Part shown: in pieces, positions 34,528 through 38,175 of the stretch | Layout of the letters: every line of letters begins with the position of its first letter | Numbering within the stretch: the stretch's first letter is position 1 | Source of the DNA: Orbicella franksi | Taxonomy: Eukaryota | Direction of reading: 5' to 3' | NCBI GenBank assembly: GCA_964199315.1 | Contig: OZ116709.1 | Location: 18,972,001-19,036,000, forward strand | DNA: 64,000 bases | Notes under the pieces: generated by a model | Told to the model about the DNA's origin: nothing | The model's input: the letters and a program-made list of their open reading frames with translations, nothing else | Database searches by the model: none | Translations under genes and position numbers: made by a program

Positions 34528-37500
34528 ATGGATTTCACGTGGGAAACACAATCTCCCAACCAGATGGGTGTCACACCTCAACTAAGCCACAGCAATGGAA
34601 GATATGGCGATGAAACACCATCTCACTGCAAGATGGAATTAGGCCCCAATGAAATACGTCATCCCTTGAATACTCTCCACGAGTCACCTTCGTATCGGAT
34701 GGAAATTCACGACGAAACACGATTATTCCAATTTGATTGTCAAAATAGGATGCCATCACAGGCCTTACAGCACCCTATTGGTTGCAAAAGTAGTATTCAG
34801 TTCCATGACACGGCGACATACCGGGGAGTTTCAGCCACCCACGATGAGATACCTTTAATTTGCGCCGGTAATACCCCTGGGGCGTCTACTTTATGTCCAA
34901 GGAAAGTTCAAACGAGGATGTCCCCACATGGAGTGAACATACAGTTAGATTCTAAAAGGGTCAGTGAATCCTACCAAGCAAGTTCAACCAACGGAATTCC
35001 ATTTCACCAGATAGGCAATCCTAGGGAATTGTTTCTTGATAATTTCCCTGGGGTAACGTCTTTGAACCCGAGAAAGCTCCAAAAGAGGATGCCACCAAAC
35101 GTGGTAGACATACATTCAAGCTCAAATAAGACACACCAATCTCACCAGGAGTGTTCTCTCAACGAAATTCCATCTTGCCAGACAGGAAATACCAGGGAAA
35201 TGCGTCCTGATAATATCCCCAGGGTAACTTCTATAGATCCGAGGGAAGCTCATTCGAGGATATCCCCTTGTGGGGTGGACATACGGTCAGATTCAAACAA
35301 GGTCAATCAACATTACCAGGAAAGTTCTGCCAACGGATTTCCATTTTACCAGACGGACATTCCCAGGGAATTGTATCCTGGCAATATTTCCGGGGAAACT
35401 CCTTTAGATCCGAGGGAAGTTCAAGGGAGAACGCCACCAAACTTGGTAGGCGTACAGTCAGATTCGGATAACGCACCTCAGTTTCAACAGGCAAGTTCTA
35501 CCAACAGAATTCCATCTTACCGTATGGATAATCCCAGGGAAATGCATCAAATCCCCGCCGAAAGCGAAACGTTGTCTTATCAAACTGGTCGCTTACAGAA
35601 AGGACTTCCATTGTGCGAAGCTGATTTCCACGAAGGAGTATCGACTCAACAAGATGATGCGTGGACTTACGAAGGAGTGAAGGCATCCAACCCCAAGACG
35701 AGCGCTAACAGCAGTACTTCAACAGCACGCTACCAACCCGTCGCTCCAAAACAGACAAGTCACAATTTGAGCGGTGCTCAGACTTGTCCGCGCTGCCACT
35801 GTGTTGTGACAACCCAACCACAGCCGTCGTATCTACCATCCTTGAACTTAATAAACGCCCCTGCTCGGCCATCGGTTATCATGGTACCACTAAAAAGAAA
35901 GGTAAAGTCAACATACCAATTCTCAATATGGTCAGTGCAAAATGAAGGCCGAGGACTGTAGACGGCAGGCGGCAGGCGGCAGACTGTAGACTGCAGACTG
36001 CAAACTGTAGACTGTAGACTGTAGTCTAGAGTCTGCATGTTATCTCTAGTCTACGGTCTGCATTTAACCCGCAGTCTGCGTTTTACCCTCGGTCTGCAGT
36101 CCGCAGTTCTCGTCTTAAAATGACCGATTCTCATTGACTGATACTGACCCGGGTCCGATCTCCACAAAACGCGCGCCTTTATTGGACTTTTCGGGTTTTT
36201 AATCTTCTTTCAGTCCTCTCAGGAATTTAATTATCCAATAATATTTCTAACTGTTCCTCCAAAATTTGAAGTCATTGGCTACAAAGCGCGCGAAATTGGA
36301 AGCGAAGATATCATGTGTTACCATTTGAAACGAGGAAAGTTACCTGTAGCGACACCGTAATACTTCACCAAAGCTCCGTCGCGCCTTACTCAACTGATAA
36401 TCATAGTACAAGCTAGTGGATTACTTTCCCACCCTAAAGTATTGCCTTATGGCTTTTACCCACGCTAGTCCTTAGAATTTGCGCATTTCTTACATCTTTG
36501 GAACTAGACTTCCTTTTACCAATTTTTTCAGACATTTATTATCATTAATTTTCTTTCCTCACCAGCTGAAGACCAAAGATCGAGAAACAATTTCGTCCAC
36601 AGCGCAAGGTCAGGAACGGGCAGCAACGAGAGATTCGCCGCAGGAAAACGTAATACCAATTCTTTTACTAGTAGTAGATATCATTCGGACTTTAGGCCCA
36701 TGGATTAGCGCACTGCTGGTTGGGTGCAGTTGTTGTCCGAGGGAGGGAACTCCTACATAAAAAGGACGGGGATACTTCTCGTATCTTTTAGGGGTTAGAA
36801 AGCGGTTTTGGTACCTTTTAGCGTCAGCTTTGGCGGTACGGTTTGGGGTATTGTGGCGAATCCTCAAAATTTCCGACGGGCAACCCCGTCCCTTTTATAT
36901 GGGTGTCTTCCCCCGGGTTGTGCACTGTTAGTTTGGTCCAATTTTTTTCTACTAGTATGTTATTACAGTGAGTCCGATTAGACTGCTTACTAATAACGCA
37001 GGTAAAAAAGACGTGAGAACCGATGATCACTTATTCTCTTGACAGGCGCTTTTAACTTCATTAGGAAACTGAGGAAGAGGTTGAGATATTAACTGAGCCC
37101 GCGTTTTTTCACAGTGGGGACATAATAGACTTGATGGCAACAAGCTCACAATGTCAACTTTCGAATTTTGTCGTGCTATCTCCTGATCAATTGATAAGAA
37201 TCAACTGGCAAGGTTTAACTGGAAATTGTGTTATTCTGGTGCCTTATTTTGCTCGAGTGCTATTTATTGTATAAGATTTATTTTAGCAGAATGTTGAGTT
37301 AATAAGACTTTAAAGGAGTCTACAATGCGCTTAAGGTGTAAAATTCAGGAGAGACAAATCCCCTGTGGGGCGCGGGGGGGGGGTACTCCCATGTTAAAAA
37401 GACGGGGGTGCTCGTCGTACCTTTAAGGGATTAAAAAAGTGGTTTTGGTAACTTTTAGGGTGTTCAGCCTCAAATGGGACACGGCGGGAGCTTTTAAGGT

Positions 37501-38175
37501 ACCTTTCAGGGCATTGAGCCGAAAACATATCACAGGAGATGATATGCTGTTCCTCTTAGGAGCGACAAACATTTTAAGTCACGCCCACAAAACAGGATCT
37601 TGGTACCTCTCAGGGGTTCTTTTCAAAACTTTCGAAGAGAAACCAGGTCTTTTTTGTATGGCAGTTCCCCCGGGAAAAATCCTTTAAAGCAAGCGATTCT
37701 TCTTGTTTAGTCATAATAATGATAAGAACAGTTTCTGACTGAGCGCCATTTTTTATTCGACTAGGAGGACTCCGATTTGTCCGGAGAAAATGACGATGAA
37801 GATGCAGAACAGAAAAGATGTTTTCGCGTAGATATCGATAGCACGACGGCAAGATTTAAGCTGACTAAAGAAGACTGGGCGAGGATACCGGTCAAGTCAT
37901 TTCCAAGCGGCGGCCGTTTATTGAGCGGGCACTGGAACCGCATTTTCGCTGACAAGATAAAGGAAAGCAACCCATGGTGCAATGTGCGCTTCAAGAACAA
38001 TCACGTGAGATCAGCAAACTCGCGCAAGGTCCACTCTTCCGTGTTTTTCAGAGGAGGCGCTGAGTGCAAGCGTCCAGAATGCAACGTGAAAATGAAATTG
38101 GTGATTCGCGAAGAATACGGAAAGCAAGTGGAAGTGACTTACAACGGTAATGTTTGTCACAGCGCCGGAGAGTGA
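34528..38175 (+). CDS. Uncharacterised two-exon protein (about 594 aa): 57-aa tandem repeats plus a C-terminal WRKY/GCM1-like (MULE transposase-type) zinc finger
   Basis: Exon 1 is 34528-35901 (1374 nt open frame, donor AAG|gtaaag). Exon 2 is 37765-38175 (acceptor ttttttattcgactag|GAG). Both sides are phase 0, giving ...PLKRK|EDSDLSGENDDED.... Exon 2 encodes WNRIFADKIKESNPWCNVRFKNNHV...CKRPEC-x24-CH. The two ORFs are directly visible; the join and the domain call are inference. Confidence 0.72.
35955..36125. repeat. Heptamer repeat tract (gactg(t/c)a) within a MITE-like element
   Basis: gactgtagactgcagactgcaaactgtagactgtag... followed by inverted gtctgca units. Confidence 0.7.
37372..37675. 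mobile_element. Near-full copy of the abundant MITE family
   Basis: gggtactcccatgttaaaaagacgggggtgctcgtcgtacc...; homologous to 48010-48595 and 61545-61870. Confidence 0.8.

Follow-up and report, generated by a model that had tools for sequence, protein, structure and literature searches.

The gene and its transcript

The stretch analysed here (referred to below as the window) comprises 64,000 nucleotides of contig OZ116709.1 of the coral Orbicella franksi (positions 18,972,001 to 19,036,000 of the forward strand) and contains, between its positions 32955 and 38667, a real and expressed coral host gene whose product ends in a finger module related to the DNA-binding domains of transposases. 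Its structure was derived from reads and contigs of four RNA runs placed on positions 32800-38700, which show four exons:

32955-33061, forward strand: 5' non-coding exon (contig of run X1; the 5' end is a minimum), containing the upstream ATG of a 54-codon upstream open reading frame
34375-35901, forward strand: exon 2, coding sequence from the ATG at 34528 (458 codons), encoding an arm rich in S, P, Q and T
36566-36649, forward strand: cassette exon of 84 nt (28 codons, phase 0), defined by RNA junctions and encoding a fast-evolving linker
37765-38667, forward strand: terminal exon (exon 4), 136 codons followed by the 3' untranslated region (UTR); the 3' end is a minimum

A polyA-RNA contig of 2625 nt (run X1, depth 21) is spliced at 33061>34375, 35901>36566 and 36649>37765, with GT..AG borders throughout. 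Raw reads of a separate study (run X24) cross the junction 35901>36566 once and the junction 36649>37765 five times; the junction 33061>34375 was seen in the X1 contig alone. The coding sequence (458 + 28 + 136 = 622 codons) is the single long open reading frame (ORF) of the assembled mRNA and starts 261 nt into it, preceded in the 5' UTR by two upstream ORFs of 54 codons (equivalent to 32992-33154, mRNA 38-199) and 14 codons (34456-34497). The frame is much longer than expected by chance and remains open in two orthologues.

A first-pass annotation of this DNA had proposed a gene of two exons, in which a long repeat-bearing exon is spliced directly to a 136-codon exon encoding a zinc finger. 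Both exons exist as described: the ORF 34528-35901 comprises 1374 nt (458 codons) and ends at the donor AAG/GTAAAG, and the downstream exon has its acceptor AG at 37763-64, its frame at 37765-38172 and its TGA stop codon at 38173-75, with the quoted motifs (the linker EDSDLSGENDDED, NPWCNVRFKNNHV, SRK, FFRGGAECKRPEC and the C-terminal CH) all present in 37765-38172. Both are also contained in one mRNA, the X1 contig, but they are joined there through the additional 84-nt exon at 36566-36649, which had been overlooked together with the 5' non-coding exon, so that the gene has four exons rather than two. None of the RNA reads and contigs over 32800-38700 shows the direct junction 35901>37765 that had been predicted, which may still occur as a minor isoform.

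In two other coral assemblies (loci L013 and L014), exons 2 and 4 are found in the same order and with the same donor and acceptor sequences, and it is by exon order and splice sites that these loci were called orthologous. L014, the more distant of the two, has kept both the cassette exon and its splice sites; in L013, the closer one, no counterpart can be detected, and the intron at this position is only about 1.3 kb long (L013 4678-5989). The cassette exon is thus dispensable; its skipping preserves the frame, and a direct junction of the 35901>37765 type is probably the normal form in the L013 species.

Introns 2 and 3 contain dispersed repeats (37331-37724 and 36149-36936) with an RNA contig word depth of up to about 2900. 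These repeats occur in many variant contigs with back- or opposite-strand joints, and they look like an abundant transcribed family that does not belong to the gene and resembles SINEs (short interspersed elements) or MITEs (miniature inverted-repeat transposable elements). Just after the donor of exon 2, at 35954-36098, the microsatellites (CGGCAGG)n and (AGACTGT)n and an 18-nt repeat are located. The start codon in exon 2 is surrounded by three CACGTG boxes in a span of 130 nt (34411-34541); in the whole window this hexamer occurs 14 times where 7.1 copies are expected, i.e. about twice as often, a count reached in 1 of 100 shuffles. The copies may be ordinary E-boxes.

Predicted fold of the C-terminal module

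The finger encoded by the terminal exon contains the following features:

37819-38172, forward strand: putative WRKY-GCM1-like zinc module of 118 amino acids (aa), net charge +10 (AF2 model, fold matches, hhalign, dN/dS)
37978-37980, forward strand: Cys of NPWC, candidate zinc ligand, invariant in the host alignment and in long transposase-like relatives
38065-38082, forward strand: C-x4-C knuckle (CKRPEC) with two candidate zinc ligands, both Cys invariant in host alignments
38155-38160, forward strand: C-terminal Cys-His; the His, a candidate ligand, is common to transposase relatives

An AlphaFold2 (AF2) model of the finger peptide, built from an alignment of 27 sequences (predicted local distance difference test (pLDDT) 81, predicted template modelling score 0.69), arranges the module from N to C terminus as a beta-hairpin, helices and the strands of a four-stranded antiparallel beta-sheet core (residues 73-80, 94-100, 108-113 and 120-132), with RFKNNHV on the first core strand. 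A helix at residues 56-67 immediately precedes this strand, and a helix before the first core strand was described for WRKY-GCM1 families associated with Mutator-like elements (MULEs) by Babu et al. (PMC1702500). In a Foldseek search of the PDB, WRKY DNA-binding domains rank first (probability 0.97-0.99, E ~0.07), while a VIA-align comparison of all against representatives places AFT2 first (Z 5.5) and WRKY33 second (Z 5.4), both of which have the WRKY-GCM1 fold. Among the Swiss-Prot models of AFDB the best match is P16320, the 120.7-kDa protein of the Drosophila NOF-FB element (residues 80-207, E 7e-4), followed by about 25 plant WRKY proteins, and the AFDB clusters matched include entries named NOF-FB, 'Transposase' and 'MuDR'. 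The suspicion that this peptide adopts a fold of the WRKY/GCM1 type is therefore borne out at the level of the model, whose best matches are WRKY and AFT2 domains and the N terminus of NOF-FB, and on these matches we call the predicted fold WRKY-GCM1-like. A profile search of PDB sequences gave no relevant match; no solved structure is related to the finger in sequence.

The predicted beta-sheet core and the C-x4-C knuckle superpose on plant WRKY domains (PDB 7z0u, 2ayd and 8k31; TM-score by target ~0.6), from which the finger differs by the lack of WRKYGQK and of H-x-H, by a sequence identity of 11-26%, by an additional N-terminal hairpin and helices, and by the insertion of a helix behind the first core strand. 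Although H-x-H is not present, the C-x4-C knuckle and the C-terminal His are conserved, and the fourth zinc ligand may be either the NPWC Cys or the Cys beside the terminal His. When transposase DNA-binding domains are aligned alone, the NPWC Cys is nearly invariant. Of the two Cys of CKRPEC, the transposase alignments show one to be invariant and the second almost invariant. Within the host family, near invariance is seen for the strand RFKNNHVRS, the equivalent of the DNA-contact strand of WRKY domains, and for four Cys/His positions, all of which the transposases share.

Relationship to NOF/Rehavkus-like transposases

A profile of host sequences and a profile of transposase N-terminal domains, kept separate to avoid circularity, align in hhalign over 118 columns with a probability of 99.9% (E 1.6e-36), and pairwise tblastn of long relatives against the finger reaches E values down to 4e-16. 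A profile search of 1.8 billion representatives matched 503 proteins, which are divided by a gap in score between the host family (at least 146 bits) and the rest (at most 111 bits); many of the latter are 600-2100 aa long and carry the domain near the N terminus. The alignment of these long relatives shows a conserved D..D..CxxH..E pattern, and their modelled core (273 of 613 residues at a pLDDT of at least 90) best matches the P-element transposase, ISCth4 (IS256 family), Hermes, RAG1 and Transib in the PDB, and a cluster named NOF-FB as well as many MULE clusters in the ESM Atlas. According to Pfam, 5 of 34 long relatives contain PHD fingers and 4 of 34 UCH domains, whereas the MULE model does not score them. 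The ubiquitin-hydrolase (UCH/USP) domains are found at either end of P0110, P0081 and other NOF-like relatives, and recall the Ulp1-protease fusions of plant MULEs.

The NOF-FB protein (P16320) and other NOF/Rehavkus-like transposases share the same module of about 118 aa with the pattern W...NPxC...FKxNxV...SRK...FFxG.C-x4-C...H. The window protein differs from them in lacking a DDE core, a PHD finger, terminal inverted repeats (TIRs) and a minisatellite; moreover, its domain is C-terminal instead of N-terminal, and it is encoded at low copy number and is under purifying selection. These comparisons support an origin of the finger module from a NOF/Rehavkus-like transposase of the Mutator superfamily, namely from its N-terminal DNA-binding domain; the homology itself is evident from the profile alignment.

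In the genome of O. franksi, two distant matches to the finger (33-35% identity) lie in ORFs of 358-375 aa, where FFDATG and LYYSLVV motifs mark the region behind the domain. Two NOF/Rehavkus-like copies are found on contig 4 (L007 7131-9199; with its array, 5781130-5784502 of the contig) and contig 11 (L008); both are broken, and they share 88% aa identity. Downstream of its ORFs, the contig 4 copy carries a subterminal minisatellite of eight 178-bp units (L007 9038-L016 502), for which no inverted copy, as a sign of a foldback element, was detected within 20 kb; neither TIRs nor a target site duplication (TSD) of this copy were found. Rehavkus elements, which are related to Mutator, have been characterized by a transposase with a PHD finger, tandem repeats in subterminal position, a 9-bp TSD and long TIRs (PMC6446971), and subterminal minisatellites have been described for them (PMC6446971; bioRxiv 10.1101/2024.12.02.626372); Cnidaria are absent from the list of Rehavkus hosts in PMC6446971. 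Just upstream of the contig 4 copy, L007 80-4327 is an intact ORF of 1415 aa of the long terminal repeat (LTR) retrotransposon type, in which a zinc knuckle, a protease, a reverse transcriptase, an RNase H and an integrase-like motif are recognizable by eye.

Elsewhere in the window, positions 52240-53109 are occupied by an 870-bp non-autonomous element with 86-nt TIRs (98% complementary), which is flanked by a 9-bp direct duplication, GATGCGTGG. The suspicion of MULE TIRs starting at 52240 was thus well placed, as the long TIRs and the 9-bp TSD fit a Mutator-like MITE.

Copy number, orthologues and selection

Within the 497-Mb genome the finger peptide has only four close copies, all with open frames, namely the window gene and three paralogues (69-71% identity) located within about 120 kb on contig 1 (3159370-3276088; L002-L004, L009-L011). 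The contig 1 paralogues are closest to Montipora XP_068694985/88, and reads of run X24 with paralogue-type variants at 37982-38015 indicate that at least one paralogue is expressed in a related species. The absence of a DDE domain and of element-bounding TIRs, which had been noted by the first-pass annotation, was corroborated: tblastn with 15 long relatives matches only 37768-38184, leaving no remnant of a catalytic core in the 64-kb window, and an inverted-repeat scan of 30000-42000 yields small local pairs only, none of which bounds the gene or the finger exon. Large ORFs downstream of the gene were not found either.

The same annotation had proposed copy number and dN/dS as means to tell a host gene from dispersed, decaying transposase copies, and both point to a host gene. 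Besides the low number of close copies and the orthologues at L013 and L014, Nei-Gojobori dN/dS ratios of the finger are 0.265, 0.172 and 0.197 for three pairs (117-118 codons), well away from 1. The repeat exon shows ratios of 0.69-0.85 against its orthologues, and the 28-codon cassette exon of about 1.2. The finger is thus constrained by purifying selection, while the arm is almost neutral and drifts, yet keeps its frame.

The homology of the domain to transposase domains, and introns full of dispersed repeats at very high RNA depth, might suggest that exon 4 is a decaying transposon fragment and that the joined RNA results from read-through or from a chimeric assembly. Such an origin is hardly credible: the introns have canonical splice sites that two other species have kept, the finger combines dN/dS ratios of 0.17-0.27 with an intact frame and low copy number, and RefSeq models of Montipora paralogues have the same layout. 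We have therefore dismissed it.

The arm, the family and its age

Upstream of the finger, the protein includes a repeat arm, short motifs and a linker:

34869-35544, forward strand: tandem 171-nt (57-aa) repeat within exon 2, about four copies (spacing 171/171/171, 64-81% nucleotide identity)
35785-35802, forward strand: Cys/His cluster CPRCHC; related Cys clusters occur in coral paralogues, not in Nematostella (comparison of P0035-P0038)
35872-35889, forward strand: conserved SVIMVP motif with basic LKRK and then the end of the exon behind it; a signature of the family, upstream of the finger
37765-37824, forward strand: acidic Ser/Asp/Glu linker, net charge -7, with low pLDDT in the AF2 model

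The repeat exon has no paralogue in the O. franksi genome, in which a search with this exon returns only exon 2 itself. SVIMVP, which is reminiscent of SUMO-interaction or HP1-box motifs, was confined among 178 proteins compared to P0037 and host-type proteins of Montipora and Nematostella; no transposase-like relative contained it.

The host family's named members, all of them uncharacterized proteins, come from Montipora foliosa, M. capricornis and Nematostella vectensis and share a layout of a disordered N-terminal part, SVIMVP, a linker and the C-terminal finger. To this family and layout belong Montipora XP_068694985, XP_068694988 and XP_068716547 as well as Nematostella LOC125556674 and LOC116606246, the fingers of which are 57-77% (Montipora) and 38% (Nematostella) identical to that of the window gene; none of them is a one-to-one orthologue, none has the 57-aa repeat arm, and none has been named. 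The first-pass assumption that the gene is possibly lineage-specific consequently holds for the 57-aa repeat arm only and not for the family, whose architecture is the same in Montipora and Nematostella.

In a maximum-likelihood tree, the coral host sequences form a clade with short branches and 99% support that lies among transposase lineages. As the tree is unrooted, the direction from transposase to host protein is taken from distribution and architecture. In Nematostella, too, an exon ends after SVIMVP plus four residues; behind it come linker exons of small size, and the whole finger lies in the terminal exon. One old domestication in Hexacorallia is suggested by the SVIMVP motif and the intron following it, which are shared by corals and Nematostella, and we have moderate confidence that a single capture took place before stony corals and sea anemones separated.

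Alternatively, the coral family and the sea anemone genes could derive from two independent captures of similar transposase domains, which would make the domestication younger than Hexacorallia. In transposases the DNA-binding domain is followed by a region of which the Nematostella protein retains about 35 residues, and the group of coral and Nematostella sequences, which receives just 82% support, also includes the transposase-type sequence P0051. Two captures nonetheless appear rather unlikely, because SVIMVP occurs in both coral and Nematostella proteins and in no transposase-like protein, because the exon end after SVIMVP, the small linker exons and the terminal exon with the DNA-binding domain correspond, and because coral and Nematostella sequences as one clade are not rejected by the approximately unbiased (AU) test (p 0.25).

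Proposed origin and function

We consider it probable that the window gene is a four-exon host gene whose 622-aa product carries a domesticated NOF/Rehavkus-like module of the WRKY-GCM1 type and functions as a nuclear, sequence-specific DNA-binding protein. The DNA-binding domain of a transposase would have been captured, with loss of the catalytic core and of the transposon ends, and joined to sequence of host type, that is SVIMVP, the acidic linker and the fast-evolving disordered arm. This capture probably predates the divergence of stony corals and sea anemones; the family would have been duplicated later within corals, and in the lineage of the window gene the disordered arm would have been expanded into 57-aa repeats. 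In the extant protein the basic beta-sheet module, with its nearly invariant strand RFKNNHVRS and four conserved Cys/His, would read DNA, and SVIMVP and the disordered arm might recruit partners. Zinc binding, DNA binding, a location in the nucleus and a regulatory role are all inferred; the targets may be either genes of the host or subterminal repeats in related transposons, and the protein might act in the role of transcription factor or transposon repressor envisaged by the first-pass annotation.

Several observations weigh against this interpretation. The scores against solved structures are modest (Foldseek E ~0.07, Z ~5.5), the WRKY-GCM1 assignment being one of predicted structures, and the ligand spacing is unlike that of classical WRKY domains (C-x4-5-C...H-x-H); it is because of these modest scores and the non-classical ligand pattern that the label WRKY-GCM1-like is given on predicted-structure evidence. 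Pfam searches with both exons, 17 host domains, 22 transposase domains and 34 long relatives gave no match above threshold to WRKY PF03106, FLYWCH PF04500, FAR1 PF03101 or MULE; below threshold, the WRKY model matched two transposon copies of the genome (E 0.007-0.0095), one transposase (E 0.055) and one host member (E 0.13). Furthermore, coral, Nematostella and the one transposase-type sequence P0051 are grouped at only 82% in the Shimodaira-Hasegawa-like approximate likelihood ratio test (SH-aLRT), and the expression evidence comes from few runs at low depth.

The atypical zinc-ligand pattern, together with a disordered arm of such length and a short linear motif, would also fit a scaffold protein in which the module no longer binds DNA and is reused as a domain binding protein, RNA or another ligand. 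Such a function is doubtful in view of the net charge of +10 of the module and the near invariance of the equivalent of the WRKY contact strand, which is shared with transposases that must bind DNA.

If the protein is a DNA-binding protein, it might be a specific repressor of transposons, which has kept the ancestral specificity for NOF/Rehavkus-like subterminal repeats and blocks or silences the respective elements instead of controlling host genes. Bearing on this is a short sequence directly downstream of the coding region:

38176-38189, forward strand: 14-mer with the palindrome GTCACGTGAC, beginning one base after the stop codon; the same 14 nt are contained in the 178-bp subterminal repeat of the related transposon copies

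Both orthologues retain the 14-mer, and most units of the transposon minisatellite contain it as well. The BLAST E value of its match to the minisatellite is 0.37, and a second exact match of 14 nt exists elsewhere in the window; the match is thus probably due to chance, and we have set the 14-mer aside as a meaningful shared site.

Specific repression would be in line with the conservation of the DNA-contact strand and of the Cys/His positions between host and transposase domains, with the presence of related elements with a 178-bp subterminal array in the genome, and with the 14-mer from this repeat directly after the stop codon of the gene. For foldback-type elements, in addition, a stronger binding of the transposase through subterminal repeats has been reported (bioRxiv 10.1101/2024.12.02.626372), which we have counted in its favour. 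However, the related elements are few and broken, with hardly a target left for repression, the conservation of the family extends far beyond the usual lifetime of one transposon lineage, and the 14-mer match is not significant (E 0.37, with a second 14-mer by chance), so that we regard a specific repressor as unlikely. More improbable still is a scenario in which the whole family is an ancient guardian against foldback-type transposons, with the finger recognizing palindromes of the GTCACGTGAC type, SVIMVP (SUMO-interaction/HP1-like) recruiting silencing machinery, the 57-aa arm reflecting an arms race and the palindrome at the stop codon serving as an autoregulatory site.

Comparison with known systems and significance

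Plants, fungi and bilaterians are well known to have turned DNA-binding domains of transposases into regulators. Transposase-derived regulators with a WRKY-GCM1 domain include FAR1/FHY3 in plants, Aft1/Aft2 and Rbf1 in fungi and FLYWCH proteins in animals (PMC1702500). Like the window protein as we interpret it, these are host proteins with a MULE-type WRKY-GCM1 DNA-binding domain, and the window gene differs from them in its donor branch (NOF-like), its ligand pattern and its host phylum. In contrast to FAR1/FHY3, which retain a whole inactive transposase, it retains the DNA-binding domain only.

A metazoan survey of transposon-derived factors using Pfam-style models recorded no factor of the FHY3 type (MULE-derived) for either Nematostella or Hydra (PMC10027918), which fits with the finger being invisible to Pfam. 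Our literature searches did not retrieve a paper describing the family of the window gene, which is not proof that there is none. The window gene is an unannotated cnidarian addition to a known route by which regulators originate, and as such useful rather than surprising.

Hexacorals carry a conserved and expressed family of this kind, which is missed by domain models and listed as 'uncharacterized' in every genome checked. The window gene would provide a dated case of a domestication confined to the DNA-binding domain, from the poorly known NOF/Rehavkus branch of transposases. A small and defined domain is now available with which DNA specificity can be tested, and Nematostella, with two loci of the family, would be a tractable model.

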